Below are positions 36,835 to 64,000 of a stretch of 64,000 nt of DNA, piece by piece. Within the stretch, counting starts at the first letter, position 1; every line of letters begins with the position of its first letter. The notes beneath the pieces were generated by a model, which was not told the origin of the DNA, made no database searches, and saw only the letters and a program-made list of their open reading frames with translations. The translations under genes and the position numbers were made by a program. The stretch is from Eutreptiella sp. 'Long Island Sound 2002' (Eukaryota > Protista > Euglenida): NCBI GenBank assembly GCA_964036045.1, contig OZ038378.1, positions 25,606,001 to 25,670,000 on the forward strand, given 5' to 3'.

Positions 36835-36890
36835 CCCACCCACCCCACCCCACCCCACCCCATCCCACCCCACCCCACCCCACCCCACCA
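36835..36890. repeat. (CCCCA)n microsatellite
   Basis: Directly visible. Confidence 0.9.
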
Positions 36891-37900: not shown

Positions 37901-37969
37901 CACGGGGGGGCCGTCTCCTCGCTTTTGTACGCGACTCCCCCCCCCCAGTAGGAGTGGGCCGAAGGCCCC

Positions 37970-38007
<38 letters not shown>

Positions 38008-38208
38008 TTGGAGGGGGGGTTCAGGGAGGGGCGATGGGGGGGGGGGTTCAGGGAGGGGCGATGGGGGGGGGGGGTTCAGGGAGGGGCGATGGGGGGGGGG
38101 TCGGGAGGGTCCGTTGGGGGGGGCGGTCCAGGTGGGGCAATTTGGGGTAGTGGGGGGGGGGGGCATAGGCTCCCGTTACCTCCCCTTGCCCTCCCTCAAG
38201 GGTGAGAG

Positions 38209-38244
38209 CTAGGGCTAGGGTAGGGGCTAGGGTAGGGTTAGGGT
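38209..38244 (+). repeat. Degenerate telomere-like (C/T)TAGGG tract
   Basis: CTAGGGCTAGGGTAGGGGCTAGGGTAGGGTTAGGG. Confidence 0.6.
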
Positions 38245-39377: not shown

Positions 39378-39450
39378 TTAGGGTTAGGGTTAGGGTTAGG
39401 GTCATGGGTAGGGTTAGGTGTAGGGTTAGGAGCATGCTGAGGGTTGGGGT
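39378..39450 (+). repeat. Interstitial TTAGGG telomeric-type repeat
   Basis: Four perfect TTAGGG units (39378-39401) followed by degenerate units. Confidence 0.8.
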
Positions 39451-39691
39451 GGGTGTTAGAGTCAAGGTTGGGTTCAAGTATAGCGTTGGGGTGCTCCACC
39501 GCCTAGGCGGGGAGGGATGCTATGTTGGCAAGGGGAACGAAAACAATTTTCCGGCGCCTTCGGCGCCACCATATGTATGGCCGGTAGCTATTGACCCTTG
39601 GTAACTAAGTGGGCCCGGAGGGCACGGATGGGGGGGGGGGGGGGGAGGGGGGGGAGTCGCGTACCCAAACCGAGGAGACGGCCCACCCGTG

Positions 39692-39842
39692 CACACCACA
39701 CCACACCACACCACACCACACCACACCACACCACACCACACCACACCACACCACACCACACCACACCACACCACACCACACCACACCACACCACACCACA
39801 CCACACCACACCACACCACACCACACCACACCACACCACACC
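39692..39842. repeat. (CACAC)n microsatellite, ~30 units, right half of the split tract
   Basis: Directly visible. Confidence 0.95.
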
Positions 39843-41782: not shown

Positions 41783-44700
41783 ACCAGGCTGGTGTGCCCA
41801 GGCCTTGGGGACTGCTGCCCCGCGCGGGCCCTCCTTGAGCACCGACCACCGCCTGGGCAGGCCTCCACGTCCCCCCAGGCTTGTGTGCCCAAGCCTTGGG
41901 GACTGCTGCCCCCCGCAGGCTCTCCTTGAGCACCGACCAGCACATGGGCGGGACCCCCCGTCCCCCGAGGCTAGTGTGCCCGGGCCTTGGGGACTGCTGC
42001 CCCCCGTAGGCCCTCTTTGACCACCGACCACTACCTAGGCAGGGCTCCCCGTCCCCTGAGGCTGGTGTGCCCGGGCCTTGGAAACTGTTGCCCCTCGTGG
42101 GCCCTCGTAGAGGACCGACCACCGCAGGGGCAAGACTCCCCGTCCCCTCAGGCTGGTGTGCCCGAGCCTTGGGGACTACTGCCCCCCGAAGGCCCTCTTT
42201 GCGCACCGACTACCACGTGGGCAGAACTCCCTGTCCCCTGAGGCTGGTGTGCCCGGGCCTTGGGGACTGCTGCCCCCCGCGGGCCCTCCTTGAACACCGA
42301 CCACCGCCTGAGTAGGACTCACCGTCCCCCCCGGCTGGTGTGCCCCGGCCTTGGGGACTGGGCCCAGCCGCGGGCCCTCCATGAGCACCTGCCCGGGCCT
42401 TGGGGACTGCTGCCCCCGGCAAGCCCTCCTTGAGCAGCGACCACCGCTTGGGCAGGACTCCCCGTCCTCCCAGGGTGGTGTGCCCAGGCCTTGGGGATTG
42501 GTGCCCCGCGTAAGCCCTCTTTGCGCACCGACTACCACGTGGGCAGGACTCCCCGTCCCCTCAGGGTGGTGTGCCCGGGCGTTGGGGACTGTTGCCCCCC
42601 GCAGGCCCTCCTTGAGCAACGACCACCGCTTGGGCAGGAGTCCCCGTCCCCCAAGGCTAATGTGCCCGGGCGTTGGGGACTGCTGCCCCCCGTAGGCCCT
42701 CCTTGCGCAGCGACCACCGCTTGGGCAGGACGTCCTGTCCCCCCAGCCTAGTGTGCCCGGGCCTTGGGGACTGCTGCCCCCCGCAGGCCCTCCTTGAGCA
42801 GCGACCACCGCTTGGGCAGGACTTCCCGTCCCCCCAGCCTAGTGTGCCCGGGCCTTGGGGACTGCTGCCCCCCGCAGGCCCTCCTTGAGCAGTAACCACC
42901 GCTTGGGCAGGACTTCCCGTCCCCCCACGGTGGTTCGCCCGGGCCTTGGGGAATGCTGCCCCCCGCAGGCCCTCCTTGAGCAGCGACCACCGCTTGGGCA
43001 GGACTCCCCGTCCCCTCGGCCTAGTGTGCCCGGGCGTTGGGGACTGTTGCCCCCCGCAGGCCCTCCTTGAGCAGCGACCACCGCTTGGGCAGGACTCCCC
43101 GTCCCCTCACCCTAGTGTGCCCGGGCCTTGGGGACTGCTGCCCCCCGCAGGCCCTCCTTGAGCAGCGACCACCGCTTGGGCAGGACTTCCCGTCCCCCCA
43201 GCCTAGTGTGCCCGGGCCTTGGGGACTGCTGCTCCCCGCAGGCCCTCCTTGAGCGGCGACCACTGCTTGGGCAGGACTTCCCGTCCCCCTAGCCTAGTGT
43301 GCCCGGGCCTTGGCAACTGTTGACCCCCGCAGGCCCTCCTTGAGCAGCGACCACCGCTTGGGCACGACTCCCCGTCGCCCCAGGCTAGTGTGGCCGGGCC
43401 TTGGGGACTGCTGCCCCCCGCAGTCCCTCTTTGAGCACCGACCACCACCTGGGCAGGGCTCCCGGTCCCCCCAGGCTGGTGTGCCCGGGCTTTGGGAAAT
43501 GTTGCCCCCCGCAAGCCCTCCTTGAGCACTGGCCACCGCCTGGGCAGGAATCCCCATCCCCCCGGGCTGGTGTGCCCGGGCCTTGGGGACTGGTGCCCCG
43601 CGTAGGCACTCTTTGCGCACCGACCACCACCTGGGCGGGGCTCCCCGTCCCCCCAGGCTGGTGTGCCCGGGCCTTGGGGACGGCTGCCCCCCGCAGGCCC
43701 TCCTTGAGCAGCGACCACCGCTTGGGCAGGAGTCCCCGTCCCCCCAAGCTAGTGTGCCCGGGATTTGGGGACTGCTTCCCCCCGTAGGCCCTCCTTGAGC
43801 AGCGACCACCGCTTGGGCAGGAGTCCCCGTCCCCCCAGGCTGGTGTGCCCGTGCCTTGGGGACTGCTGCCCCCCGCAGGCCCTCCTTGAGCAGCGACCAC
43901 CGCTTGGGCAGGAGTCCCCGTCCCCCCGGGCTAGTGTGCCCGGGCCTTGGGGACAGCTGCCCCCCGCAGGCCCTCCTTGAGCAGCGACCACCGCTTGGGC
44001 AGGACTTCCCGTCCCCCCAGCCTAGTGTGCCCGGGCTATGGGGACTGCTGCCCCCCGCAGGCCCTCCTTGAGCAGCGACCACCGCTTGGGCAGGACTCCC
44101 CGTCCCCCCAGGCTGATGTGGCCGGGCCTTGGGGACTGCCGCCCCCCGCAGTCCCTCATTGAGCACCGACCACCACCTGGGCAGGGCTCCCCGTCCCCCC
44201 AGGCTGGTGTGCCCGGGCTTTGGGAACTGTTGCCCCCCGCAAGCCCTCTTTGAGCACTGGCCACCGCCTGGGCAGGAATCCCCGTCCCCTCGGGCTGGTG
44301 TGCCCGGGCCTTGGGGACTGCTGCCCCGCGTGGGCCCTCTTTGCGCACCGACCACCACCTGGGCGGGGCTCCCCGTCCCCCCAGGCTGGTGTGCCCGGGC
44401 CTTGGGGACTGCTGCCCCCCGCAGGCCCTCCTTGAGCAGCGACCACCGCTTGGGCACGACTCCCCGTCCCCCCAGGCTAGTGTGCCCGGGCCTTGGGGAC
44501 TGCTGCCCCCCGCAGGCCCTCCTTGAGCAGCGACCACCGCTTGGGCAGGAGTCCCCGTCCCCCCAAGCTAGTGTGCCCGGGCCTTGGGGACTGCTGCCCC
44601 CCGTAGGCCCTCCTTGAGCAGCGACCACCGCTTGGGCATGACTCCCCGTCCCCCCAGGCTGGTGTGCCCGGGCCTTGGGAACTGCTGCCCCCCGCAGGCC

Positions 44701-47700
44701 CTCCTTGAGCAGCGACCACCGCTTGGGCAGGAGTCCCCGTCCCCCCGGGCTAGTGTGCCCGGGGCTTGGGGACTGCTACCCCCCGTAGGCCCTCCTTGAG
44801 CAGCGACCACCGCTTGGGCAGGACTCCCCGTCCCCCCAGGCTGGTGTGCCCGGGCCTTGGGGACTGCTGCCCCCCGCAGGCCCCCTGGAGCACCGACCAC
44901 CACCTGGGCAGGAGTCCCCATCCCCCTAGGCTAGTGTGCCCGGGCCTTGGGGACTGCTGCCCCTCGCAGGCCCTCCTTGAGCAACGACCACCGCTTGGGC
45001 ACGACTTCCCGTGCCCCGAAACCTAGTGTGCCCGGGCCTTGGGGACTGCTGCCCCCCGCAGGCCCTCCTTGAGCAGCGACCATCGCTTGGGCAGGACTCC
45101 CCGTCCCCCCGGGCTGGTGTGCCCGGGCCTTGGGGACTGCTGCCCCCCGCAGGCCCTCCTTGAGCAGCGACCACCGCTTGGGCAGGACTTCCCGTCCTCC
45201 CAGGGTGGTGTGCCCGGGCCTTGGGGATCGGTGCCCCGCGTAAGCCCTCTTTGCGCACCGACTACCACGTGGGCAGGGCTCCCCGTCCCCTCAGGGTGGT
45301 GTGCCCGGGCCTTGGGGACTGTTGCCCCCCGCAGGCCCTCCTTGAGCAGCGACCACCGCTTGGGCAGGACTTCCCGTCCCCCCAGGCTAGTGTGCCCGGG
45401 CCTTGGGGACTGCTGCCCCCCGCAGGCCCTCCTTGAGCAGCGACCACCGCTTGGGCAGGACTTCCCGTCCCCCCAGCCTAGTGTGCCCGGGCCTTGGGGA
45501 CTGCTGCCCCCCGCAGGCCCTCCTTGAGCAGCGACCACCGCTTGGGCACGACTCCCCGTCCGCCCAGGCTGATGTGGCCGGGCCTTGGGGACTACCGCCC
45601 CCCGCAGTCCCTCATTGAGCACCGACCACCACCTGGGCAGGGCTCCCCGTCCCCCCAGACTGGTGTGCCCGGGCTTTGGGAACTGTTGCCCCCCGCAAGC
45701 CCTCTTTGAGCACTGGCCACCGCCTGGGCAGGAATCCCCATCCCCCCGGGCTGGTGTGCCCGGGCCTTGGGGACTGCTGCCCCGCGTAGGCCCTCTTTGC
45801 GCACCGACCACCACCTGGGCGGGGCTCCCCGTCCCCCCAGGCTGGTGTGCCCGAGCCTTGGGGACGGCTGCCCCCCGCAGGCCCTCCTTGAGCACCGACC
45901 ATCGCCTGGGCAGGCCTCCACGTCCCCCCAGACTGGTGTGCCCAGGCCTTGGGGACTGTTGCCCCCCGCAGGCTCTCCTTGAGCACCGACCAGCACATGG
46001 GCGGGACTCCCCGTCCCCCGAGGCTAGAGTGCCCGGGCCTTGGGGACTGCTGCCCCCCGTAGGCCCTCTTTGACCACCGACCACTACCTAGGCAGGGCTC
46101 CCCGTCCCCTGAGGCTGGTGTGCCCGGGCCTTGGAAACTGTTGCCCCTCGTGGGCCCTCGTAGAGCACCGACCACCGCAGGGGCAAGACTCCCCGTCCCC
46201 TCAGGCTGGTGTGCCCGAGCCTTGGGGACTGTTGCCCCCCGAAGGCCCTCTTTGCGCACCGACTACCACGTGGGCAGAACTCCCTGTCCCCTGAGGCTGG
46301 TGTGCCCGGGCCTTGGGGACTGCTGCCCCCCGCGGGCCCTCCTTGAACACCGACCACCGCCTGAGTAGGACTCACCGTCCCCCCAGGCTGGTGTGCCCAA
46401 GCCTTGGGGATTGCTGCCCCCCGCAGGCCCTCCATGAGCACCTGCCCGGGCCTTGGGGACTGCTGCCCCCGGCAAGCCCTCCTTGAGCAACGACCACCGC
46501 TTGGGCAGGACTCCCCGTCCTCCCAGGGTGGTGTGCCCGGGCCTTGGGGACTGGTGCCCCGCGTAAGCCCTCTTTGCGCACCGACTACCACGTGGGCAGG
46601 ACTCCCCGTCCCCTCAGGGTGGTGTGCCCGGGCCTTGGGGACTGTTGCCCCCCGCAGGCCCTCCTTGAGCAGCGACCACCGCTTGGGCAGGACCACCCGT
46701 CCCCCCAGCCTAGTGTGCCCGGGCATTGGGTCCTGCTGCCCCCCGGAGGCACTCCTTGAGCAGCGACCACCGCTTGGGCAGGACTTCCCGTCCCCCCAGC
46801 CTAGTGTGCCCGGGCCTTGGGGACTGCTGCTCCCCGCAGGCCCTCCTTGAGCAGCGGCCACCGCTTGGGCAGGACTCCCCGTCCCCCCAGGCTGGTGTGG
46901 CCGGGCCTTGGGGACTGCTGCCCCCCGCAGTCCCTCTTTGAGCACCGACCACCACCTGGGCAGGGCTCCCCGTCCCCCCAGGCTGGTGTGCCCGGGCTTT
47001 GGGAACTGTTGCCCCCCGCAAGCCCTCCTTGAGCAGCGACCACCGCTTGGGTAGGAATCCCCATCCCCCCGGGCTGGTGTGCCTGGGCCTTGGGGACTGG
47101 TGCCCCGCGTAGGCCCTCTTTGCGCACCGACCACCACCTGGGCGGGGCTCCCCGTCCCCCCAGGCTGGTGTGCCCGGGCCTTGGGGACGGCTGCCCCCCG
47201 CAGGCCCTCCTTGAGCACCGACCACCGCCTGGGCAGGCCTCCACGTCCCCCCAGGCTGGTGTGCCCAAGCCTTGGGGACTGCTGCCCCCTGCAGGCTCGC
47301 CTTGAGCAGCGACCAGCACATGGGCGGGACCCCCCGTCCCCCCAGCCTAGTGTGCCCGGGCCTTGGGGACTGCTGCCCCCCGTAGGCCCTCTTTGACCAC
47401 CGACCACTACCTAGGCAGAGCTCCCCGTCCCCTCAAGCTGGTGTGCCCGGGCCTTGGAAACTGTTGCCCCTCGTGGGCCCTCGTAGAGCACCGACCACCG
47501 CAGGGGCAAGACTCCCCGTCCCCTCAGGCTGGTGTGCCCGAGCCTTGGGGACTACTGCCCCCCGAAGGCCCTCTTTGCGCACCGACTACCACGTGGGCAG
47601 AACTCCCTGTCCCCTGAGGCTGGTGTGCCCGGGCCTTGGGGACTGCTGCCCCCCGCAGGCCCTCCATGAGCACCTGCCCGGGCCTTGGGGACTGCTGCCC

Positions 47701-50700
47701 CCGGCAAGCCCTCCTTGAGCAGCGACCACCGCTTGGGCAGGACTCCCCATCCTCCCAGGGTGGTGTGCCCGGGCCTTGGAGACTGGTGCCCCGCGTAGGC
47801 CCTCTTTGCGCACCGACTACCACGTGGGCAGGACTCCCTGTCCCCTCAGGGTGGTGTGCCCGGGCGTTGGGGACTGTTGCCCCTCGCAGGCCCTCCTTGA
47901 GCAACGACCACCGCTTGGGCAGGAGTCCCCGTCCCCCAAGGCTAATGTGCCCGGGCCTTGGGGACTGTTGCCCCCCGCAGGCCCTCCTTGAGCAGCGACC
48001 ACCGCTTGGACAGGACTCCCCGTCCCCCCGGGCTGGTGTGCCCGGGCATTGGGGACTGGTGCCCCCCGTAGGCTCTCTTTGCGCACCGACCACCACCTGG
48101 GCGGGGCTCCCCGTCCCCCCAGGCTGGTGTGCCCGAGCCTTGGGGACGGCTGCCCCTCGCACGCCCTCCTTGAGCAGCGACCACCGCTTGGGGACGACTC
48201 CCCGTCCCCCCAGGCTAGTGTGCCCGGGCCTTGGGGACTGCTGCCCCCCCGCAGGCCGTCCTTGAACAGCGACCACCGCTTGGGCAGGAGTCCCCGTCCC
48301 CCCAGCCTAGTGTGCCCCGGCCTTGGGGACTGCTGCCCCCCGCAGGCCCCGTGGAGCACCGACCACCACCTGGGCAGGAGTCCCCATCCCCCTAGGCTAG
48401 TGTGCCCGGGCCCTGGGGACTGCTGCCCCTCGCAGGCCCTCCTTGAGCAACGACCTGCGCTTGGGCGGGACTTCCCGTCCCCCCAGCCTAGTGTGCCCGG
48501 GTCTTGGGGACTGCTGCCCCCCGTAGGCCCTCCTTGAGCAGCGACCACAAGCTTGGGCAGGACTCCCCGTCCCCCCAGGCTGGTGTGCCCGGGCCTTGGG
48601 GACTGCTGCCCCCCGTAGGCCCCGTGGACCACCGACCACCACCTGGGCAGGAGTCCCCATCCCCCTAGGCTAGTGTGCCCGGTCCTTGGGGACTGCTGCC
48701 CCTCGCAGGCCCTCCTTGAGCAACGACCACCGCTTGGGCAGGACTTCCCGTCCTCCCAGGGTGGTGTGCCCGGGCCTTGGGGACTGGTGCCCCGCGTAAG
48801 CCCTCTTTGCGCACGGACTACCACGTGGGCAGGGCTCCCCGTCCCCTCAAGGTGGTGTGCCCGGGCGTTGGGGACTGTTGCCCCCCGCAGGCCCTCCTTG
48901 AGCAACGACCACCACTTGGGCAGGAGTCCCCGTCCCCCCAGGCTAATGTGCCCGGGCATTGGGTCCTGCTGCCCCCCGCAGTCCCTCCTTGAGCAGCGAC
49001 CACCGCTTGGGCAGGACTTCCCGTGCCTCCAGCCTGGTGTGCCCGGGCCTTGGGGACTGTTGCCCCCCGCAGGCCCTCCTTGAGCAGCGACCACCACTTG
49101 GGTAGGACTCCCCGTCCCCTCAGCCTAGTGTGCCCGGGCCTTGGGGACTGCTGCCCCCCGCAGTCCCTCTTTGGGCACCGACCACCACCTGGGCAGGGCT
49201 CCCCATCCCCCCGGGCTGGTGTGCCCGGGACTTGGGGACTGGTGCCCCCCGTAGGCCCTCTTTGCGCACCCACCACCACCTGGGCAGGGCTCCCCATCCC
49301 CCCAGGCTGGTGTGCCCGGGCCTTGGGGACGGCTGCCCCCCGCAGGCCCTCCTTGAGCAGCGACCACCGCTTGGGCAGGACTCCCCGTCCCCCCGGGCTA
49401 GTGTGCCCGGGCCTTGGGGACCGCTGCCCCCCGCAGGCCCTCCTGGAGCAGAGACCACCGCTTGGGCAGGAGTCCCCGTCCCCCCAGGCTCGTGTGCCCG
49501 GGCCTTGGGAACTGCTGCCCCGCGTAGACCCTCCTTGAGCACCGACCACCGCGTGGGCAGGACTCCCCGTCCCCCCGGGCTGGTGTGCCCGGGCCTTGGG
49601 GACTGCTGCCCCGCGTAAGCCCTCTTTGTGCACCGACCACCACCTAGGCAGGGCTCCCCGTCCCCTCAGGCTGGTGTGCCCAGGCGTTGGGGACTGCTGC
49701 CCCCCACAGGCCCCGTGGACCACCGACCACCACCTGGGCAGGAGTCCCCATCCCTCTAGGCTAGTGTGCCCGAGCCATGGGGACTGCTGCCCCTCGTAGG
49801 CCCTCCTTGAGCAACGACCACCGCTTGGGCAGGACTTCCCGTCCCCCCAGCCTAGTGTGCCCGGGCCTGGGGGACTGCTGCCCCCCGGAGGCCCTCCTTG
49901 AGCAGCGACCACCGCTTGGGCAGGACTCCCCGTCCCCCCAGGCTGATGTGCCCGGGCCTTGGGGACTGCTACCCCCCGCAGGCCCTTCTGGAGCAAAAAC
50001 CACCGCTTGGGCAGCAGTCCCCGTCCCCCCAGGCTGGTGTGCCCGGGCCTTGGGGACTGGTGCACCGCGTAGGCCCTCCTTGACCACCGACCACCACCTA
50101 GGCAGGGCTCCCCGTCCCCTCAGGCTGGTGTGCCCGGGCGTTGGGGGCTGTTGCCCCGCGTAGACCCTCCTTGAGCACTGGCCACCGCCTGAGCACGAAT
50201 CCCCGTCCCCCCGGGCTGGTGTGCCCGGGCCTTGGGGACCGCTGCCCCGCGCAAGCCCTCCTTGAGCACCGACCACCGCTTGGGCAGGGCTCCCCGTCCC
50301 CCCAGGCTAGCGTGCCCGGGCCTTGGGGAGTGCTGCCCCCCGTAGGCCCTCTTTGAGCACCGACCACTACCTAGGTAGAGCTCCCCGTCCCCTCAGGCTA
50401 GTGTGCCCGGGCCTTGGGGACTGCTGCCCCCCGTAGGCCCTCCTTGAGCAGCGACCACCGCTTGGGCAGGACTCCCCGTCCCCCCAGGCTGGTGTGCCTG
50501 GGCCTTGGGGATTGCTGCCCCCGCAGGCCCCGTGGAGCACCGACCACCACCTGGGCAGGAGTCCCCATCCCCCTAGGCTAGTGTGCCCGGGCCTTGGGAA
50601 CTGCTGCCCCCCGCAGGCCCTCCTTGAGCACCGACCACCACCTGGGCAGGAGTCCCCATCCCCCTATGCTAGTGTGCCCGGGCCTTGGGGACTGCTGCCC

Positions 50701-53672
50701 CCCGCAGGCCCTCCTTGAGCAGCGACCACCGCTTGGGCAGGACTCCCCATCCCCCCAGGCTAGTGTGCCCGGGCCTTGGGGACTACTGACCCCCGCAAGC
50801 CCTCCTTGAGCAGCGACCACCGCTTGGGCAGGACTCCCCGTCCCCCCAGACTGGTGTGCCCGGGCCTTGGGGATCGCTGCCCCCCGTAGGCCCTCCTTGA
50901 GCAGCGACCACCGCTTGGGCAGGAGTCCCCGTCGCCCCAGACTGGTGTGCCCGGGCCTTGGGGAGTGCTGCCCCCCGTAGGCCCTCCTTGAGCACCGACC
51001 ACCAGGACTCTCCGTCCCCCGAGGCCAGTGTGCCCGGGCCTTGGGGACTGCTGCCCCCCGAGGACCCTCCTTGAGCACGGACCACCGCCTGGGCGGGACT
51101 CCCCGTCCCCCCACGCTGGTGTGCCCGGGCCTCGGGGACTGCTGCCCCCCGAGGACCCTCCTTGAGCACCGACCACCGCTTGGGCAGGACTCTCCGTCCC
51201 CCTACGATGGTGTGCCGGGGATTGGGGGACTGCTGCCCCCCGCAGGCCCTTCATGAGCATTGACGACCACCTGGGCGGAACTCGCCTTCCCCTCAGGCTG
51301 GTGTGCCCGGGCCTTGGGGACTGCGGCCCCCCGTAGGCACTCCATGAGCACCGACCACCGCCTGGGCGGGTTTCCCCGTCCCCGTAGGCTGGTGTCCCCA
51401 CGCCTTGGGGACTACTCCCCCCGCAGGCCCTCCTTGAGCACCAACCACCGCTTGGGCGGAACTCGCCTTCCCCTCAGGCTGGTGTGCCCGGGCCTTGGGG
51501 AGTGCTGCCCCCCGTAGGCCCTCCTTGAGCACCGACCACCAGGACTCTCCGTCCCCCGAGGCCAGTGTGCCCGGGCCTTGGGGACTGCTGCCCCTCGAGG
51601 ACCCTCCTTGAGCACGGACCACCGCCTGGGCGGGACTCCCCGTCCCCCCGGGCTGGTGTGCCCGGGCCTCGGGGACTGCTGCCCCCCGAGGACCCTCCTT
51701 GAGCACCGACCACCGCTTGGGCAGGACTCCCCGTCCCCCTACGATGGTGTGCCGGGGATCGGGGGACTGCTGCCCCCCGCAGGCCCTTCATGAGCATTGA
51801 CGACCACCTGGGCGGAACTCGCCTTCCCCTCAGGCTGGTGTGCCCGGGCCTTGGGGACTGCTGCCCCCCGTAGGCACTCCATGAGCACCGACCACCGCCT
51901 GGGCGGGACTCCCCGTCCCCGTAGGCTGGTGTCCCCACGCCTTGGGGACTACTCCCCCCGCAGGCCCTCCTTGAGCACCAACCACCGCTTGGGCGGAACT
52001 CGCCTTCCCCTCAGCCTGGTGTGCCCGGACCTTGGGGACTGTTGCCCCCCGCAAGCCCTCCATGAGCACCGACCACCGCCTGGGCAGGATTCCCCATCCC
52101 CCAAAGCTGGTTTGGCCGGGCCTTGAAGGCGGCTGCCCGACACGGACCCTCCTTGAACACCGACCACCACCTGCCTAGGACAGCCCGTCCCCCCAAGGCC
52201 GGGGTGCGGGGCCTTGGCGATTGCTGCCCCCCACAGGCCCTTCATCAGCACCGACCACCGCCTGGGCGGAACTCGCCTTTCCCTCAGGCTGGTGTGCCCG
52301 GGCCTTGGGGACTGCTGCCTCCCGCGGCCCCTCCTTGAGCACCGACCACCACCTAAGCAGAACTCCCCGTCCACTCAGGCTGGTGTGCCCGGGCCCTGGA
52401 AATTGTTGCCCCTCGCAGACCCACCTTGAACACCGACCACCACCTGGGCAAGACTCCCCATCCCCCCAGGGTTGGTGTGCCCGGGCCTTGGAAAATGCGG
52501 CTCCCCAATGGCCCTCTTTGCGCACGGACCACCGCCTGGGCGGGACTTCCGGTCCCCCCAGGGTTGGTGTGCCCGGGCCTTGGGGTCTGCTGCCCCTCAC
52601 AGGCCCTCCTTGAAAACCTACCAGCACCTGGGCAGGACTCCCCGTCCCCCCAAACGGGTGTGCCCGGGCCTTGGGGGCTGCTGCCCCCCGCAAGCCCTCC
52701 ATGAGCACCAACCACCGCCTGGGCGGAATTCGTCTTCCCTTGAGGCTGTTGTGCCCATGCCTTGGGGATTGCTGCCCCTCGCAGGCCCTCCTTGAACACC
52801 AACCACCACCTGGGCAGGACTGCCCGTCCCCCCAAGGCTGGTGTGCCCGGGCCTTGGGGACTGCTGCCCCCCCCACGGGCCCTCAAAGAGCACCGAGCAC
52901 CGCCTTGGCAGGACTCCCCGTCCCCGCATGCTGGTGTGCCCGAACCTTGGGGAACGCTGCCCCTCGCAGGCCCGCCTTGGACTACGACCACCGCCTGGGC
53001 ACGAGTCCCCGTCCCCCCAAGCTGGTGTGCCCGGGCCTTGGGGAATGCTGCCCCCCTGGGGCCCTCCTAGAGCACCGACCACGGCCTGGGCAGGACTCCC
53101 CGTCCCCACAGGCGGGTGTGCCCGGGCCTTGGGGGCTGCTGCCTCCCGCAGGCACTCCATGAGCACCGACCACCACCTGGGCGGGACTCCCAGTGCCACA
53201 AACGTGGTGTGCCCGGGCCTTGGGGACTGCTGCCCCGTGTGGATCCTCCTTGGGCAACGACCACCGCCTGGGCGGAACTCGCCTTCCCCTCAGGATGGTG
53301 TGCTCGGGCCTTGGGGACTGCTGCCCCCCGGAGGCCCTCCTTGCGCACCCCACCGCCTACGCGGGACTCCCAATCCCCATAGGCTGTTGTGCCCGGGCCC
53401 TGGGGGCTGCTGCCCCTCAAAGGCCCTCCTTGAGCACCAGACACCACCTAGGCAAGACGCCCCCGTCCCCTAAGGCTGCCGTGCCCGGGCCTTGGGGACT
53501 GTTGCCCCCCGCAGGCCCTCCTTGACCACCGACCACCTCCTGGGCAAGACTCCCCGTCCCCCCAAGACTAGTGTGCCCGGGCCCTGCTGCCCCCTGAAGG
53601 CCCTCTTTGCGCACCGACCACCGCCTGGTCAGGACTCCCCGTCCCCCCAAGGAGGGTGTGCCCGAGCCTTGG
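41783..53672. repeat. GC-rich 91-bp tandem satellite (~130 monomers) with higher-order duplications
   Basis: Consensus GTGTGCCCGGGCCTTGGGGACTGCTGCCCCCCGCAGGCCCTCCTTGAGCAGCGACCACCGCTTGGGCAGGACTCCCCGTCCCCCCAGGCTG (91 nt). ORF starts recur every 91 bp (42855, 42946, 43037). Edges are more diverged than the centre. Confidence 0.97.
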
Positions 53673-56075
53673 GCGCTGCCGCCCGCACATGACAGGATTC
53701 TCCCGCCATGCCCACACCGAAGCACTCTGGGGCCCCTGGGGGCATGGCTGCCAGGGTTTATTCCGATCCACACACACGTGGCAGACCGCGGTCGTCTCAG
53801 AGTGGGTCTGGCAGGGGGCCTCGGCCAAGGAGGAATTCCGGAACTCCCAGTCCTATACCCTCCAAGCACACCACGCGCTCAGAGGGGGATGTCCTGCGGT
53901 GCTTACACTAGGGTAATACACCCACCACCCGAGGTGCCCCCACCTCATCGCTACGCTGCAGCGGGTAGTGGATGACGTGGCCATGCCCATGTGGATGCCG
54001 GGCCCCTGCTCAGGAACGCCCCCCATCCTGGTACGGGGCCCCGCGGACCCCGGGCGGGAGCAGCGGCCGCCCCTGTCCCCCAAGTGGAGGTGTACCCAAC
54101 CCAGTACGGCGATGTTGTGCAGGTGATCATCCCGCCGACAATCTACGAAACGGTGCAGGCCCTGGGATACCACCACCTGGGTGACCTGTACACTGAGGTC
54201 CACTGTGTCAAACGGGAGCGTGCCGCGAAGGAACGGGCACCAACCCGCAAGGGTAATCCCAGGCCTTAGGGCGTGGCTCGCCCGCCACGACGCTGCCCAC
54301 GCCAAGGTGGCAAGCTGCACCCAAGGACTGGATCCCGGGCGCCGTGCCCGCGTCCCCGGCGGAAGTGGCCAAGACCACCCGGATGGAAACCGTGTACCAC
54401 GGAGGGTATCCCATCAAGGTGACCACGGCCATGAAGAATACCATGGAGGCCGCGGACTGGGCGCCGGCACTCCGGGTGTGCTGCCAGCCCCGCGGCGCAC
54501 TACAGAACAACACCAGACTACACCGCCTCCCAGTGGCCCTTCTAGGCGTTCAAGTGCAGGTCAACGCGCCCTTGCATGCCAAACTATGGGACGACCGACA
54601 ACACGTGTGCCTGGCCCATGTGCAAAGCGTGGGGGTTTGGGCGCCCACCATCATGTGGATGTCCGCGCCCCCGGCCGACGCCTACTGGCAGTGCCCCAAG
54701 GCACCGCAGGCCCCCCTATCACTGTCCGTGGATAGCCATAGCCACGGCAGCAGTGGCAAAATTCAAGTACCCTGTGGAGTGTGTAGCGCACAAGTGCCCG
54801 GGGCACCCGAACAAGGGGCCCCTCTACTACTCACTCAATACGGCGGGGACAGTACGAGCGGAGCTCTGCCCTGCCCTGCGAACCCACCTCCGGGAGCACC
54901 ATGGAGACCTGGCCCTCGTGGGGCCGCACGGCCGGGCTACCGACCCTCCGCAAGTGATGGCCCCCGAGGTCAAGCCGGGCATTTGGTTCCATGACCTGCC
55001 GGCGCTGGCCACTCTCCGCGGTGCCGTCGCCGCAGTGGATGCCGGAACCACGGAGGCAGGCATGGCAAAGGCAGGAGTCGCCCAGAGCGGACCCGCCGCC
55101 TACCAAGCCCACGTGGCCTCAGGGGTAGGCACCTCCCAGGAAGGGGAGGCCGTGATCCTCCTCTCGTACGTCCGCAAACTGGCGCAACAGCCAGGGGTAT
55201 ATTGGCTGGTGCCGGACTCCGAGGCGGCGGTGGGGGCCCTCCGCACGTACCAGGAGGGGGACCATTGTGGAGATGGCATACATCACCTCTACGCCGCTGT
55301 CCTAAGAGGCAAACGCCTCTCCCTGAAGTCGGCCATGAACGTGGTTACCACGCCGTCGCACTGGATAATGGACCTGAACGTCTGTGTTGATGTAGCGACG
55401 CAGGAGTCGCCACAGTTGGACCTGACATGGCTCCTCCGGCGCCCTTTCTCCTTCATCCCCCCAGTGACCTACCGGGACCAGTGTCAGCTTTCCCTAACGG
55501 CGCTGAGGAACTTGTTGCACGATCGGGCCTCCATTGCGGCGCAGGCCGGCTATGGGGAGTGAACTACATGTCGGGAGGTGGGCTCCCCCTCGACTGGTTC
55601 GATAGTGACTAGCAGCGCCAGATCACGGCGCACCGCATGGACAACATCCCTATGATGACTGCCTTGGCCCACCGGTCCTCCCACCGAGACACGGTGCTGG
55701 ACACAACATGTCTCCTCTGTGGGGTGCAACCCGAGGGGGCACCCCACCTCTGGCCTGCTCGGCCCAGTCCCATGAGTGGTAACCAGTCCGCTGGCGACTC
55801 GCGGAATGGCTCGACCAAAAGGTGGGAACACGGGCGGCCCCGGTGCGCCACCGGCTGTGGGAGCCGGCTGTACTGGAGCAGTGGGCAGCACCCTTGCGGA
55901 CCACCTCTATGCAGTGGGCCCACATGGAGTGCTCACGGCCCCACGCGCTGGGGACAAAGTTCATACATCACGTCATCGAAGAGTCAATACGGGTCTGGTA
56001 CGCCCACGCCAGGGCGCGTGCCACGTTGCTAAAAGCCCACCTAGGCCCAGGCAGCACGATGGGCCCAGGCAGCAC
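53673..56075 (+). mobile_element. Non-LTR retrotransposon copy A (5'- and 3'-truncated): end of RT thumb, linker, RNase H, CCHC
   Basis: Homologous to copy C from HAHT..LWGPW onward. RNase H motifs AVDAG, TSQEGEA, LVPDSEAA and PSHW...LN..VD. TTCLLCGVQPE..PHLW. Several stops and frameshifts. Confidence 0.9.
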
Positions 56076-56196
56076 CACACCACACCACACCACACCACAC
56101 CACACCACACCACACCACACCACACCACACCACACCACACCACACCACACCACACCACACCACACCACACCACACCACACCACACCACACCACACC
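56073..56196. repeat. (CACAC)n tract, ~24 units, junction A/B
   Basis: Directly visible. Preceded by a 14-bp direct repeat GGCCCAGGCAGCAC (56044-56057 and 56062-56075). Confidence 0.95.
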
Positions 56197-57775
56197 TCGA
56201 TCCCGGGCGCCGTGCCCACCTACCAGGCGGACGTGGTCAGCGGAGGCCGAGTGGCCAAAACCACCCAAGTAGTGACCGTGTACCACGGGGACAACCCCTC
56301 CGGGTGACCGCGGCCATGCAGGATACCATGGAGGCGCCAAACTAGGTGCCAGAACTCAGGGTGTGCCACCAGCCCCCAGACACGCCACCAAGCGCACCAG
56401 GCTACACCGCCTCTTGCTGGCCCTCCTGGGTATTCAAGTGCAGGTGAACGCGCCCCTGCATGCCCAGCTACGGAAAGATCACCACCATGTGTCCCTCGCC
56501 CGGCTTCAGCGCACCGGGGTCTGGGCGCCCACCATCGTGTGGATGAACGACCGCCGACCGACGCCTACTAGCAGTGGGCCCAAACGTCGCGGCCCCCTCT
56601 AGTCACCGTCACCGCCGCGCTGCCGCCGTTTCCGTGAAAAGCCATAGCCCCAGCGGCCGTGGCGAGTTTCAAGTACCCAGCGGAGTGTGTGACACACAAA
56701 TGCCCGGGGCACCCGAGCAAAGGGCCCCTTTATTACTCCCTCGATACGGTGGGAGCGGTGCCAGCGGAGCTCAACCCAGCCCTGCACACCCATCTCAGGA
56801 AGCACCGGCCCTCCTGGCGCCGCACGGCCGGGCTACCGACCCCCCGAATGTGCTGGCCCCCGAGGTTCAGCCAGGCATCTGGTTCCATGATCTGCCTGCG
56901 CTGACTACCCTCCGCGGTACAGTCGCTGCGGTGGATGCGGGGGCCATGCGGGCGGGCATGCCAATGGCCGGAGTCGCCAAGAGCGGGCCTGCGGCTTACC
57001 AGGCCCACGTGGCCTCGGGTGTGGGCACCTCCCAGGAAGGGGAGGCTATGATCCTCCTCTCGTACATCCGAAGGCTGGCACAGCAGCGAGGGGTATATGG
57101 GCTGGTGCCGGACGCGGAAGCGGCAGTGGGGGCCCTTTGCACGTACCAAGAGGGGGGCCACTGTGGAGATGGCATCCACCACCTCTACGCAACAGTCCTT
57201 GGGGGAGAGCGCCTCTCCCCGGAGTCCGCTATCAACGTGGTTACCACGGCGTCGCACTGGATAACGGACCTCAACGTCCGTGTGGATGCGGCGATGCAGG
57301 AGCTGCCGGAGGTGGACCTAACATGGCTCCTCCGGTGCCCTTACTCCTTTCTCCCCCCGGTGCCCTACCGCGACTAGTGTCGGTTCTCCCCGACGGCGCT
57401 GGGGGACTGGTTGCAAGATCGGGCCGCAATACCGGTGCGGGCCGGCTATGAAGGCCGGTGGGGGGTGAACTACATGTTGGGAGGAGGTCTCCCCCTTGAC
57501 TGGTTCGATAATGATAAGCAGCGCCACATCACAGCGCACCGTATGGACAACCTCCCAACGATGACGGTCCTGGCCCACCGGTCCTCCCACCAGGACACGG
57601 TGCTGGATACCACGTGCCTCCTCTGTGGAGCGCAGCCCGAAACGGCGCCCCACCTTTGGGGCTGCTCGGCACAGTCCCATGAGTGGGGGCCGGCCCGCCG
57701 GCGGCTCGCGGCGTGGCTCGACCAGAAGGTGGGGACGCGGGTGGCCCCGGTGCGCCACCAGCTGTGGGAGCCGGC

Positions 57776-58647
57776 CACGGGGGCTGGCGCCAGCCAATGT
57801 GTGACCCCGAGGGGTGTTCGACAGTTTGGGGGGCTGTAGGGGGGGGGGGGACCCCCACCCCCCTCCGAAGGGGGGGGGGGACCCCACCCCCCCCTTCGTT
57901 GAGCCCAACCCAGCACCTTTTCCGGCAGGCCCCGTCCAAGCGCGCAAACACACAAAGCTAACAAGATGCACGGTGAATGGTGATTGTCTCGGGGAGCCCC
58001 ACCGCATCAGAGCGGGGGACTAAATCAGAAGTGGCTACTTAACCCCTGCCATCTCGGGGAGCCCCTCCACACCAGAGCGGGGGACTAAATCAGAAGTGGC
58101 TACTTAACCCCTGCCGTCTAGGGGAGCCCCTCCACTTCAGAGCGGGGGACAAAATCAGAAGTGGCTACTTAACCCCTGCCGTCTCGGGGAGCCCCTCCGC
58201 CTCAGAGCGGGGGGCAAAATCAGAAGCGGCCCACAAGTGGGCAACGTGGCTACTTAACCCCTGCCGTCTCGGGGAGCCCCACCGCATCAAAGCGGGGGAC
58301 TAAATCAGAAGGGGCTACTTAACCCCTGCCGTCTCGGGGAGCCCCTCCGCCTCAGAGCGGGGGGCAGAATCAGAAGTGGCCCAGAAGTGGGCAAGGTGGC
58401 TACATAACCTTTTTGTGCTTTTCAGCCATTTTTGAATTCTCCACAAATTCTGAGTATTTTGAGTATAGACACATGGGGTGGAACAAAAAAATTCCCCCCC
58501 GCCGTATGCCTAAAACAAAATCTGCGGCGCCTCCGGCGCCGACAAAGCACACTGTTCCGTGCGACAATTTTGGGGTCCGTAGAGGGGGGGGGGGGTGCCC
58601 CCCCCCCCCCCTTTGGGGTCGGGTCCCGGCCAGGGCCGGCCCCCGTG
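57776..58647. mobile_element. Non-autonomous hAT-like element (872 bp) nested in copy B
   Basis: 13-bp TIR CACGGGGGC(T/C)GGC. 8-bp TSD GAGCCGGC at 57768-57775 and 58648-58655. Removing the element restores the retroelement reading LWEPAVLEQW. Confidence 0.9.
57989..58410. repeat. 65-bp tandem repeat (~6 units, one 85-bp variant) inside the nested MITE
   Basis: AGAGCGGGGGACTAAATCAGAAGTGGCTACTTAACCCCTGCCGTCTCGGGGAGCCCC... starts at 58009, 58074, 58139, 58204, 58289 and 58354. Confidence 0.9.
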
Positions 58648-59093
58648 GAGCCGGCAGTGCTGGAGCAGTGGGCAGCAGCCCTGCGGACCCCCTCTATGCA
58701 GCGGGCCCACCTGGAGTGCACAATGTCCGACGCGCTGGGCACCGAGTTCATACGCCACGTCATCGAGGAGTCAATACGGGTCTGGTACGCTCACGCCAAG
58801 GCGCGTGCCACGTTGCTGAAGGCCCGCCTAGGCCCGGGCAGCACGATGGCGTGGGCACTGCAGGAGCTGCGCCCGCACCAGCAAGCGGAGCGAGAGGGAG
58901 TACAGCGGGAGCTCGTAGAGTGAGGACGGTCGCCAAGGGGGTGCCGACAAGGTCTTCCCGACTCCCCCTCTCTCCGCCAGGACCTACACACTTACACACG
59001 GCGCGCACACAACACACACAGACAGCCCCGCCCGTTTACCTGTACCCACGGGTAGACATCCCGGCCATTGCCTTCTGGTAACAGCGCCTTCGG

Positions 59094-59159
59094 CACACCA
59101 CACCACACCACACCACACCACACCACACCACACCACACCACACCAAACCGCACCACACC
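59094..59159. repeat. (CACAC)n tail of copy B, ~13 units, junction B/C
   Basis: Directly visible. Confidence 0.95.
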
Positions 59160-62100
59160 GGACATGCTAGGCACCTCGGTCACGGCGGGTCCTGCCCTCA
59201 AAAGGAGCCTTGTGGCCCTGGGGGAGGCCCAGCGCCAACAAAACCTCCGGGAGATTAAGCGCAGGGCCCTCCGGCGCTCGCAAGACACCCAGAACCTCAA
59301 GCGCGGCCCGGAGTAGTGGAGGGAGATCCAACGGCGCAGCCGCGGCCCCCCGCGGGATGTCTCTGAGATCCCGCTGGACAGTAAGGCGCTCCTCAACCCT
59401 AGGGAGACGTTGTCCGCCCTGTACTTGAGCCACCAACGGCTCCGGGGCCATAGCTACCGGATACGGGACGACCCTGACCGGTGGGCCCACTTCCAGCGGT
59501 ACCTGGGGCTCTTGCCGCAACATGCCCTGCCGGCCCGCGGCGACTATGTCCAACCTCGCCACCTGTGGGATGTGCAGTCAGGCAAGGCCCGAGGCCCCGA
59601 CCTCCGCCTAACCGAGGCGGACGTCTGCAGCGACATCACATGGTACCGGCACTTGCCGGAGGCGGACCAGGGGACCCTCTGCGCCGTGGTGCGTAGCCCC
59701 CCAGTCAGCCGCACGGTGGGCAGGCGGGGCCGGGTAACCCTGCTCCTCAAAAACCCGGACCAACCTGTCCGGGAGGCAAACCTCCGGGGGATAACTATCT
59801 CCTCCCACGTATCAAAGCTGGAGCCCACAGCTTTCTACGCCGTTGCGACGGCCATCTATGAGCGGGCCCTGGGAGGCCCCTGCCTCGTAGGAGGCATGCG
59901 AGGAGTGACCCTCCAGGAGGTGGTGCGCACGGTGCACATGAAGCTGGACCAGGCCCGCCTCCAGCGCCGAGTGGTGGACGTCCTGATCACGGATCTTGCG
60001 AAGTATTTCGACGTGATCGCCCAGGACATCCACCCGATAGTGGGGGCCTGGGTAGGCCTAGGGGAGGCGGACCACCTCGCCACCCACACCGAGGGTTTCT
60101 CGTACACCCTGCCCCTGGGCCCATGGCAGTCCAGCACCCTGGCACAACTCCTGGGAACTCCCCAGGGCACGATCCAGGGAGTCCATGCGGGGGCTACGGT
60201 GGCGCTCCCTTTCCTGCGCTTCATGGACATCGCGTACAGGACTCATACGGTGGAGCCGTTCCGCTTCCCAGGGCTTTTGTGGGTGGACGACACTATCGTC
60301 ATCCTGGAGCGGGGCGACTCCCGCCCCATACATGGGGTCCTACTGGATCAGCGGACCTACTATCAGGGAATCCTGCGGGTGGATGTCCCTAACCGCAAGA
60401 TCCACCATGGGTCGACGTCCGACCCGCACCCCCTGCGGTCCCACGCCGGCGGCGGTGGCCCGCCATCTGGGCCGCACGTGGGTAACGGACACCCCGGACC
60501 ATCGCCGGGGCCCCGGAGATACAGCCCTCCAACGTCCTGCGATACATGGGGACTGACATATATCTCCAGGGGGCGCCCATAGCCCCCCGCAACCTGCCGG
60601 AGATCCGGGCGGCCGTCTGGAAGCAGCTCCGCCCCCAGCGGCTCTCCCCGGACGCAGCCATGATGGTCCTCATGGCCAAACTCCCGAGCAAACTGCTCTC
60701 CCTGGCCAGTGTGTACCGCCCCACGGCCCGGGTGCACACTGCCAATGACGCCCTCATGTTCAGGGCGTATAAGCATGTGACAGGCATCTCCCGCCACGCC
60801 CACACGGACCCACTCTGGGGGCCATGGGAGCATGGTTGCCAGGATCTGACCCGGTCGGAACACTCGTGGCAGGCCGCGGTGGTCAGAGAGTGGGTCCGGC
60901 AGGGCGCCTGGGCCAAAAAGGAATTCCGGGACTCCCAGGCCCACTCCCTTCAGACGCACCAGGCGCTAAGGGGGGGGTGCCCGGCAGTGCTTACTCCGGG
61001 GCAGTACACCCACCACCCGAAATGCCCTCACCTCATAGCCACGCTGCAGAAAGTCGTGGACGAGGTGGCCATGCCCATGTGGATGCCGGGCCCCTGCTCG
61101 GGGACAACCCCGATCTTGGTACGAGGCCCCGGGGGACCCCGGGCAAGGGCGGTGGCGGCCCCTGCCCCCCGGGTGGAAGTGTACCCGACCCCGTATGGCG
61201 ACGTCGTGCAGGTGATCATCCCCCCGGTCATCTACGATACGGTGCAGGCCCTCGGGTACCACCACCTGGGCGACCTCTACATGGAGAACCACCACGTGCT
61301 GCGGGAGTGCGCCCTGAAGGAGCGGACGCCGGCCCGCAAGGGAATCCCGGGACTGCGGGCATGGCTGGCCCGTCACGCGGCCGTCCTGGTCTCCCTGCTG
61401 AGGGAGCCCCCGCCGCGATTGCAGGCAGCGCCCAAAGACTGGATCCCGGCCGCCGTACCCGCCTACCAGGCGGAAGTGATCATCGGCGGCCGGGCGGCCA
61501 AAACCACCCGCATGGCGACTGTGTACCACAGAGCCCCTCCGGGTTACCGCGGCCATGCAGGATACCATGGAGGTGGAGGACTGGGTCCCTGAACTGAGGG
61601 TGTGCCGCCAGCCCCCGGGCACGCTGCCCAGTGACACCAGGCTACACCTCCTCCTAGTGGCCCTCGTGGGTATCCAGGTGAAGGTGGACGCGCCCCTGCA
61701 TGCCCGGCTGTGGAGCGACCACCACCATCAGTCCCTGGCCCAGCTGCAGCTCACCGGGGTCTGGGCGCCCACCATCGTGTGGCTGGCCGCCCCCCCGACA
61801 GACACCTACTGGCGATGGGCCAAGACGTCGCGAGCCCCTCTCGTAACGGTCACCGCGGCGCTGCCGCCTCTCCCGTGGATAGCCATAGCCCCAGCGGCCG
61901 TGGCTCTTTTCAAATACCCGGTGGAGTGTGTGGCGCATAAGTGCCCGGGGCACCCGAGTACGGGCCCCCTCTATTACTCCCTCGATACAGTGGGCACGGT
62001 GCCGGCTTTGGCTACCCTCCGCGGAACTGTCGTGGCAGTGGACGCGGGGGCAACGCGAGGGGCTATGGCGATGGCCGGAGTTGCCCAGAGCGGGCCCACG

Positions 62101-63317
62101 ACCTACCAGGCCCGGGTGACCTCGGGAGTGGGCACCTCCCAGGACGGGGAGGCAATGATCCTTCTCTCATATGTCCGCGGGCTGACGCAACAGCCGGGAG
62201 TCTACAGGTTGGTGCCGGACTCGGAAGCGGCGGTGGGAGCCCTCCGCACGTACCACGAGGGGGGCCACTGCAGGGATGGTATCCACCACCTCTACGCGAC
62301 CGTCCTGGGGGGACAGCGCCTCTCCCCGGGGTCCGCTCAATGTGGTGACCATGCCGTCGCCTTGGATCACGGACCTCAACGTCCGTGTGGACGCGGCGAC
62401 GCAGGAGCAGCCGGAGGTGGACTTAACGTGGCTCCTCAGGCGCCCTTACTCGTTCCTCCCCCCGGTGCCCTACGGCGACCAGTGTCAGCTCTCCCCAACG
62501 GCGCTGAGCGCCTGGTTGCAGGAACGGGCCGCGATTCCGGCGCAGGCCGGCTATGAGGCCCGATGGGGGGTGAACTATATGCCGGGAGGAGGGCTCCCCC
62601 TAGACTGGTTGGACAAGGACCAGCAGCGCCACATCACGGCGCACCGTATGGACAACATCCCTACGATGGCGGACTTGGCCCACCGGTCCTCCCACCGGAA
62701 CACGGTGCTGGACACGACCTGCCTCCTCTGTGGGGCGCAGCCGGAGACGGCGCCTCACCTATGGGCCTGCTCAGCCCAGGCCCATGAGTGGGGGCCGGCC
62801 CGCCGGCGGCTCGCGGGGTGGCTCCACCGGAAGGTGGGCGGGCGGGCGGCCCCAGTGCGCCACCAGCTGTGGGAACCGGCGGCCCTAGAGCAGTGGGCGG
62901 CAGCCCTGCGGACCCCCTCTATGCAGCGGGCCCACCTGGAGTGCGCGGGGCCCAACGCGCTGGGCACCGAGTTTATCCGCCACGTTGTGGAGGAGTCCAT
63001 CAGGGTCTGGTACGCTCACGCGAAGGAGCACGCCACATTGCTAAAGGCCCGCTTGGGCCTGGGCAGCACAATGGCGTGGGCGTTGCAGGAGCTGCGCCTG
63101 CACCAACAGGCGGAAAGAGAGGGGGGGCAGCGGGAGCTCCTGGGATAACGATGGCCGCCACGGCGGTGCCCGCCAGGTTTTTCCAGCCTCCCCCACTCTC
63201 CGCCCAAGAACCACATACCCACACACAGCGTGCACGCAACACACACAGCCCAGCCCGTTTACCTTTGCCCTTGGGTAGACATCCCGGCCTTTTGCCATTT
63301 GGTAACAGCGCCTTCGG
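59160..63317 (+). mobile_element. Non-LTR retrotransposon copy C (longest; 5'-truncated before RT): RT, thumb, long linker, RNase H, CCHC, 3' UTR
   Basis: KARGPD, GRVTLLLKNPD...NLRGITISSHVSKL, TDLAKYFD, GTPQG (~60154), WVDD (60280-60291), RNase H ~62020-62410, CLLCGAQPETAPHLWAC (C-x2-C-x8-H-x3-C, ~62719), stop 63146-63148. Frameshifts near 60560, 61540 and 62340; ~140-nt deletion near 62000 relative to copies A, B and D. No endonuclease within the retained part. Confidence 0.93.
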
Positions 63318-63358
63318 CACACCACACCACACCACACCACACCACACCACACCACACC
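63318..63358. repeat. (CACAC)n tail of copy C, ~8 units, junction C/D
   Basis: Directly visible; same preceding GGTAACAGCGCCTTCGG as copy B. Confidence 0.95.
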
Positions 63359-64000
63359 GTATCGAGGGAGTAATAGAGCGGAGCCAGCGGAGCTACACCA
63401 AGCCCTGCGCACCCACCTCAGGGAGCACCATGGGGACAAGGCCCTCCTGGCGCCCCACGGCCGGGCGACCGACCCCCCGCGAGTGTTGGCCCCTGAGACT
63501 CGCCCAGGCGTCTGGTTCCATGACCTGCCTGCGCTGGCGACCCTCCGAGGCAGTGTCGTGGCGGTGGATGCAGGGGCCACGCAGGCGGGTATGGCCATGG
63601 CCGGGGTCGTCCAGAGCGGGCCTGGGGAGTACCAGGCCCAGGTGGCCTCAGGAGTGGGCACCTCCCAGGAGGGGGAGGCGATGGCCCTCCTCTCGTATGC
63701 CCGCCGGCTGGCGACACAGCAGGGGGTTTACTGGCTGGTGCCGGACTCGGAGGCAGCAGTGGGGGCCCTCCGCACGTACCAGGAAGGAGGGCACTGCGGA
63801 GATGGCATCCACCACCTCTACGCCACTGTCCTGGGGGGGCACCGCCTCTCCCCGAGGTCTGCCATCAATGTGGTGACCACACCGTCGCACTGGATCACGG
63901 ACCTCAACGTCCGTGTGGACGCAGCGACGCGAGAGCCGCCGGAGGTAGACCTCACGTGGCTCCTCAGGCGCCCCTACTCATTTATCCCCCCAGTGCCCTT
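63359..64000 (+). mobile_element. Non-LTR retrotransposon copy D (5'-truncated, runs off the window), RNase H region
   Basis: WFHDLPALATLRGSVVAVDAG...GTSQEGEA...LVPDSEAAVG...VVTTPSHWITDLNVRVD. Confidence 0.9.

Follow-up and report, generated by a model that had tools for sequence, protein, structure and literature searches.

The window analysed here is a 64,000-nt stretch of the genome of the euglenid Eutreptiella sp. 'Long Island Sound 2002' (contig OZ038378.1, forward strand; C1 below), and its right part carries four pieces, A to D, of a long interspersed nuclear element (LINE) that lie on the same strand and are joined head to tail by tracts of the pentanucleotide CACAC. To their left lie a 12-kb satellite, the 5' region of an old LINE copy and an interrupted pentanucleotide tract. 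The window copies were mapped by BLAST against a reference full-length copy of 12,395 bp from contig C24 (FL), and the junction tracts with Tandem Repeats Finder (TRF), which reports the unit as CACCA, i.e., CACAC in another phase. The features, in window coordinates, are as follows.

37805..37900, + strand: left part of the target microsatellite, (CACAG)8(CACAC)11, as read from the sequence; unique DNA precedes it
37901..39691, no strand assigned: element with terminal inverted repeats (TIRs) of about 44 bp, CACGGGGG...CCCCCGTG, an unrelated later insertion into the microsatellite and not part of the LINE
39692..39842, + strand: (CACAC)30, immediately 5' of a complete element 5' end
39843..42345, + strand: 5' region of an old copy, beginning at the canonical family 5' end CTGAGTACTCCCCAG (BLAST: FL 1 to ~2666, 71-93% identity)
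41784..53684, + strand: array of a 91-bp monomer, ~131 copies (TRF; BLAST)
53690..56062, + strand: copy A, FL 9662-12107, RNase H and CCHC region (BLAST, 76.6% identical to FL)
56073..56196, + strand: junction tract (CACAC)24.8 (TRF, 100% matches)
56197..59093, + strand: copy B, FL 10323 to the end, broken by a second TIR element at 57775-58648
59094..59159, + strand: junction tract (CACAC)13.2 (TRF)
59160..63317, + strand: copy C, FL 8030 to the end, with a 140-bp deletion at 62006 and frameshifts (BLAST alignment 59160-63356)
63318..63358, + strand: junction tract (CACAC)8.2 (TRF)
63359..63378, - strand: inverted segment of 20 nt with which copy D opens at its 5' side; its exact reverse complement is element sequence 61969-61988 in copy C
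63379..64000, + strand: copy D, FL 10886 onward, continuing beyond the window to C1:25670843 (BLAST)

An initial annotation of this sequence had placed (CACAC)n at all three junctions between the copies, which TRF bore out with perfect or near-perfect tracts of 24.8, 13.2 and 8.2 units. It had also noted a common end for copies B and C, and both do terminate in GGTAACAGCGCCTTCGG followed by CACACCACAC; the 27-mer composed of GGTAACAGCGCCTTCGG and the repeat occurs twice in the window, versus 0 expected from shuffles. Copy B aligns in two pieces (56196-57775 and 58647-59137) separated by an 870-bp foreign insertion. Motifs of reverse transcriptase (RT) are found in copy C at ~59740-60400 (DLAKYFDV at ~59990, VDD at ~60285), followed by those of RNase H at ~62030-62400 and CCHC at ~62720-62775. 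Past copy D, about 56 nt of repeat (CACAC units) lead to a complete 5' end at C1:25670900, and the array extends beyond the window to a further 3' end at C1:25673489.

Copies B, C and D share one strand and have different start points, and the four pieces begin at FL 9662 (A), 10323 (B), 8030 (C) and 10886 (D). Pairwise identity among the window copies is 77-84%. Moreover, several features are private to a single copy, namely the 140-bp deletion in C, the TIR insertion in B and the 20-nt 5' inversion in D, and small 5' inversions of the latter kind are a trace of twin priming or snap-back priming in LINE integration. Since starts, identity and private features all differ, we rejected tandem duplication as the source of this array, in line with the annotation, which had argued for independent insertions from the differing starts and the divergence.

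The full-length element and its proteins

Searching the source genome (2.28 Gb in 2317 contigs) with copy C as query, we found that every copy reaching the first base of copy C extends further upstream, and upstream walking at two loci yielded a full-length element of ~12.4 kb. FL begins at CTGAGTACTCCCCAG and is immediately preceded by a (CACAA)54 tract, which in turn adjoins the 3' end of another copy. The element has a leader of ~3 kb with 91-94-bp monomers, and an intact copy on contig C5 carries two open reading frames, ORF1 of 1212 aa and ORF2 of 1794 aa, which overlaps ORF1. The family is abundant, with copies on all large contigs: the exact 16-mer of its 5' end occurs 763 times genome-wide (0-1 for the control) and the exact 17-mer of its 3' end 2584 times (0 for the control), while a protein search returned 1604 candidate RT matches, dozens of which, among the 120 scored, lie in an open frame of exactly 1794 aa. 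Its copies show the LINE hallmark of a fixed 3' end without terminal repeats and with 5' starts scattered from FL 1 to FL 11878.

The domain order of ORF2 is APE (apurinic/apyrimidinic-type) endonuclease, RT, RNase H and CCHC, an assignment made domain by domain from model, profile, feature and motif evidence. The endonuclease is typed as APE on a predicted structure: a model of ORF2 residues 50-330, predicted by AlphaFold from an input of 24 relatives (pLDDT 70, pTM 0.70), matches the human L1 endonuclease (Foldseek E 7e-11, probability 1.00, TMt 0.71) and also the TRAS1 endonuclease structure, and the alignment shows conserved N, E, D-N, D and SDH motifs. For the RT, three diverged relatives of the region (39-47% identity) match Pfam RVT_1 with a best E of 6.8e-08, ESM features score 0.95 to RVT_1 clusters, and the motifs DLAKFFDV, GTPQG and VDD are visible in ORF2. 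The C-terminal part scores 0.93-0.94 in ESM features to RNase_H and zf-RVT clusters, with the motifs D-E-D-H...D and C-x2-C-x7-H-x4-C recognised by eye. Thus two of the checks that the annotation had proposed, recovery of a full-length copy and typing of its endonuclease, yielded the ~12.4-kb FL and an APE-type assignment by AlphaFold and Foldseek.

The same order, APE, RT, RNase H and zinc finger, characterises ORF2 of I/ingi-type LINEs, and ingi and L1Tc are LINEs of the kinetoplastids, the sister group. The likeness lies in domain order, with no sequence-level link among the 150 phmmer hits listed. These came from an exhaustive phmmer search of 1.84 billion proteins with 442 hits, the 150 listed being short family-related fragments (some 32-47% identical) that include no named LINE clade. 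Pfam searches up to E 10 found no family in six window ORF pieces, ten pieces of the C24 copy or the intact 1794-aa ORF2, nor in most of ORF1 (1149 of 1212 aa); ten relatives of the endonuclease region gave no Pfam family either. Sequence searches of PDB, by phmmer with ORF2 and with an RT-region profile, produced no meaningful match, and a word-based protein search returned only copies of the same family (94-98% identity). A consensus fold of the last 150 nt contains only a weak hairpin (-10.9 kcal/mol), so we make no structural claim for the 3' end.

We found no description of this family in the literature on Euglena LINEs, and a 2026 preprint on Dam-carrying retrotransposons concerns other elements. 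A spliced-leader origin of the 5' end (CTGAGTAC...) was considered, and with only about six bases in common with the Euglena leader, no such claim is made. One copy (L051/L052, C14:25066000-25083999, minus strand) has a 3565-aa open frame in the protein search and at least 2168 aa in a stop-free scan to the end of the stretch. Both the first 107 nt and the canonical 3' end are missing from it, and (GT)n / (GCGT)n stands upstream in place of CACAN. Its long frame may represent an ORF1-ORF2 fusion or a variant lineage.

Junctions with pentanucleotide tracts

To describe the junctions, 51 loci and the window were merged into 33 regions (309 kb), a small sample biased to relatives of copy C and FL, and element pieces and pentanucleotide tracts were mapped on them. 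At the 5' side, 21 of the 24 junctions inside the regions abut a (CACAN)n tract, including all six complete 5' ends. The truncated copies that abut a tract start at FL 3081, 5846, 6756, 6833, 8030, 8411, 8604, 8969, 10323, 10420, 10784 and 10862. Consistent with this, CACANCACA lies within 8 nt upstream of 323 of the 389 reverse-strand sites and 63 of the 78 sites listed on C1 (81-83%), these being the subsets of the 763 exact full-length 5' ends on which the figure was measured. The annotation had called for the fraction of 5' junctions with repeat, and both counts put it high; its proposal of a CACAC tail and insertion into CACAC tracts is thus supported, with the target widened to (CACAN)n, in which the fifth base is free.

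At the 3' side, all 41 junctions lie at ...GCCTTCGG or a variant with up to 3 mismatches, and in all 41 CGG (or a one-base variant) is followed by CAC, nearly always as CACAN. Since the 3' junctions share one CACAN phase, the first tail units are probably copied from the RNA. The 5' phase is unit plus C in 10 of 21 junctions by script count and in 12 of 21 after two reassignments by eye; this hints at a preferred 5' break position, but the element's first bases make the call ambiguous. The sense strand carries CACAN at all but one sampled locus.

The fifth base varies by locus (C, A, G and mixed forms) and is identical on both flanks of a locus. It does not track a tree built from the final 1.2 kb of 24 copies, where CACAA turns up at three separate positions and CACAG at a single one, inside a group of CACAC copies; the C24 copy (CACAA), for instance, is 96.5% identical over this stretch to a C14 copy (CACAC). 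Some tails switch unit type a few units in, as expected if RNA-derived units join units of the target. Together, this pattern speaks for insertion into CACAN tracts of whatever type that were already in place, the CACA core providing the pairing. Five upstream tracts are preceded by non-element DNA, either unique or merely CA-rich. Many tracts may still have been made in the first place by the family itself.

Of the first 100 3' ends on C1, 44 lie within 13 kb of another, versus ~2% expected at random placement, and the neighbour is on the same strand in 42 cases and on the opposite strand in 2. This strong co-orientation accords with the suggestion of the annotation that each insertion leaves a new landing site and so builds arrays. 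The same arrays contain a non-autonomous partner of ~2.6 kb (L031:1-1747 on C24, also L012/L022, L026 and L025), which begins immediately behind a tract. It is built from a tandem array of 47-bp units and ~300 bp of unique sequence, joined to the final 100-150 nt of the LINE with their terminal GGTAACAGCGCCTTCGG and CACAN units. At L027 (C23:34073562-34077880), a copy lies inside an imperfect (CACAG)n of more than 1.2 kb on each side, and both neighbouring 3' ends are followed by the odd start CACATCACTGCACGGCACAG.

Origin of the arrays

We consider it likely, at a probability of about 0.75, that what is stacked in the window are independent insertions of a single abundant LINE of the APE type, made by target-primed reverse transcription (TPRT) in one orientation inside (CACAN)n / (NTGTG)n tracts. 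The APE endonuclease would nick the GT-rich strand of the tract, and a few CACAN units at the 3' end of the RNA would anneal to the nicked strand, priming cDNA synthesis. Insertion would thereby split the tract, so that repeat remains on either side and the next copy can land there; repeated use of the leftover repeat would give co-oriented head-to-tail arrays. The outcomes that the annotation had named as contrary, unique 5' flanks for most copies elsewhere and breakpoints shared among A to D, were looked for and not seen.

Several observations weigh against this scenario. Three of the 24 sampled 5' junctions are exceptions: a copy on C8 is without a tract, the copy at C14:25.07 Mb is flanked by (GT)n, and at C16:33.75 Mb the tract is 80 bp away across another element. 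We saw no empty, pre-insertion site and deduce from the flanks that the tracts existed before the insertions; because both flanks consist of the same short repeat, a target-site duplication is not recognisable. Tracts without an upstream copy could moreover be tail-only (abortive) insertions of the same family. True local duplications also occur in arrays elsewhere, such as the FL 8924 start found twice in C16:32.8 Mb. Finally, one composite, made of a 3' fragment, repeat, an old copy from FL 11878, repeat and a copy from FL 10784, recurs at L026 (C22:11.2 Mb), L025 (C908) and L024 (C23:26.0 Mb) with differing tract lengths, and points either to segmental duplication or to a retrotransposed read-through transcript.

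The tracts could alternatively owe everything to the LINE: there would be no independent CACAN microsatellites, all tracts would be tails reverse-transcribed by the family (through 3'-end stuttering or tail-only insertions), and new copies would prime on old tails. About two thirds of the sampled upstream tracts indeed come directly after a 3' end, either that of another copy or that of the non-autonomous partner, very long tracts (>880 bp, >1.3 kb) lie next to copies, and the fixed phase of the 3' junctions is expected if the first units are RNA-copied. However, the five tracts with unique or merely CA-rich DNA upstream speak against such pure self-tail targeting, and the fifth base is locus-specific, not lineage-specific, and therefore fits a property of the target better than a templated tail. 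We regard this alternative as possible, though doubtful. A related idea, which we put forward tentatively and think unlikely, is that the LINE makes CACAN tracts because its RT reiteratively copies the terminal CACAN units in a telomerase-like manner, leaving tail-only insertions; together with its expandable 91-94-bp monomers and the 47-bp-repeat partner, it would then be a main source of both pentanucleotide microsatellites and kilobase satellites across the 2.3-Gb genome.

Tandem or segmental duplication, or unequal crossing-over between repeats, gains plausibility from the repeated FL 8924 start, from near-identical blocks at C16:33.75 and 33.79 Mb and from the three-site composite. As an account of the window array, it is nevertheless very improbable, given the differing starts, the pairwise identity of only 77-84% and the deletion, TIR insertion and inversion that set C, B and D apart. 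Arrays could also spread as units, with read-through transcripts running from an upstream copy through the repeat into the next copy and being retrotransposed together; the composite at C22, C908 and C23, with its differing repeat lengths, is what this would produce. Yet C908 may be an unplaced duplicate of C22, neighbours in the window come from different branches and ages, and tracts upstream of solitary copies would be left unexplained, which makes this account improbable. Repeated insertion into CACAN tracts thus remains our preferred explanation for the co-oriented LINE arrays, and the element's own monomers account for the adjoining 12-kb satellite, described below. This bears on the annotation of a 2.3-Gb assembly rich in repeats. 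Since Pfam does not recognise ORF2, standard repeat or gene annotation will miss or mislabel the family.

Related elements, the satellite and neighbouring insertions

Microsatellite-specific LINEs of the APE type are known from animals and include Waldo in (ACAY)n, Mino in (AC)n, Kibi in (TC)n, Koshi in (TTC)n and Dong in (TAA)n (PMC3812793). The LINE of the window resembles them in its APE-type endonuclease, one kind of microsatellite on both flanks, fixed orientation and a 3' end that runs into the repeat, and its CA-rich target resembles those of Waldo and Mino. Grouped by flanks, orientation and target, it belongs, on the sequences compared, to this class. It differs in its pentanucleotide target, the fifth base of which is free (CACAC, CACAA, CACAG and others), and in having a euglenid instead of an animal host, as well as in its Pfam-invisible ORF2 with RNase H, its length of 12.4 kb and its monomeric 5' leader. 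It thus adds a protist, pentanucleotide-targeting member to a short list of microsatellite-specific LINEs that so far all come from animals. With thousands of copies, many intact ORFs and a free fifth base, it is a good system for separating endonuclease cleavage from RNA-tail pairing in target choice.

The Zepp LINEs of Chlorella and Coccomyxa, as far as the account in PMC3446292 goes (Higashiyama et al. 1997 cited there), form self-associated clusters and are likewise GC-rich LINEs with piles of their own 5'-truncated copies. In that account the Zepp clusters are nested, one per chromosome, and lie in centromere or telomere regions, whereas the LINE of the window is present in thousands of copies on all chromosomes, with a pentanucleotide tract linking the members of its strictly head-to-tail arrays. 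Telomere LINEs likewise insert in one orientation into a short tandem repeat or line up head to tail, TRAS/SART inserting in (TTAGG)n and HeT-A/TART/TAHRE forming head-to-tail arrays at Drosophila telomeres (PMC5537684). Unlike these, the LINE described here is not confined to chromosome ends and its repeat is not telomeric. The telomere analogy drawn by the annotation therefore fails on position: the window lies 25.6 Mb into C1, a contig of at least 200 Mb, and not near a chromosome end. Together with the copies on all large contigs, this location (C1:25.6 Mb) rules out a telomere-specific LINE.

The annotation had set the array beside a separate satellite, and this part needs revision. The 91-bp array is homologous to FL's own monomers, with 117 BLAST matches of FL 2100-2900 spanning 41839-53580; judging from this homology, the satellite at 41784-53684 is the LINE's own internal 5' monomer array, expanded to ~12 kb, and we count it as part of the element. 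The array would have grown after insertion. In other full-length copies it measures 7.5 units of 94 bp (C24) or ~2.6 kb (C6). A leader of tandem monomers, the number of which varies between copies, is familiar from mouse L1. Compared with it, the units here are 91-94 bp long and number from 7.5 to ~131, forming a 12-kb satellite in the window. A promoter function of the monomers, by analogy, would be a guess.

Copy A stands apart from the other pieces at both edges. On the 5' side it adjoins the 91-bp array directly, a CACAN tract being absent there, and for this reason its 5' edge is probably not a TPRT truncation point. The description of four diverged, same-strand, 5'-truncated copies in the annotation therefore holds for strand and divergence (four pieces, 77-84% alike), with the truncation of copy A as the part that probably does not. 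At its 3' side, copy A has no canonical end and stops at FL 12107, straight into the repeat. Nearly all copies have a 5' CACAN tract, which copy A lacks, and its divergence is like that of the 5' part (76.6% identity to FL, versus 71-80% for the two long stretches of the 5' part). On these grounds, 39843-56062 is probably a single old copy whose monomer array has expanded hugely and which has lost 6.8 kb internally, copy A being its 3' remnant. Within 55960-56072, the stop at FL 12107 is preceded by a 14-nt direct duplication (GGCCCAGGCAGCAC, GATG, GGCCCAGGCAGCAC), after which the repeat begins. The odd 3' stop may stem from priming at an internal site of the RNA, since the internal CAGCAC resembles a CACAG-type unit.

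Further left, an (ACCCC)10 tract lies at 36839-36888, ~1 kb upstream of the CACAN tract, with no link to the LINE seen. The tract at 37805-37900 is cut off from that at 39692-39842 by the TIR element between them. This 1.8-kb element (37901-39691) sits inside the CACAC tract, has ~44-bp TIRs (CACGGGGGGGCCGTCTCC... / ...GGAGACGGCCCACCCGTG) and contains long G runs. It also contains a degenerate TTAGGG-like run at ~39370-39440, which accordingly belongs to an element unrelated to the LINE. The insertion in copy B (57775-58648) has similar ends (CCACGGGGG... / ...CCCCCGTGG) and contains palindromes of G/C homopolymers as well as tandem repeats of 65 bp (57986-58409). The two insertions probably belong to the same TIR superfamily.

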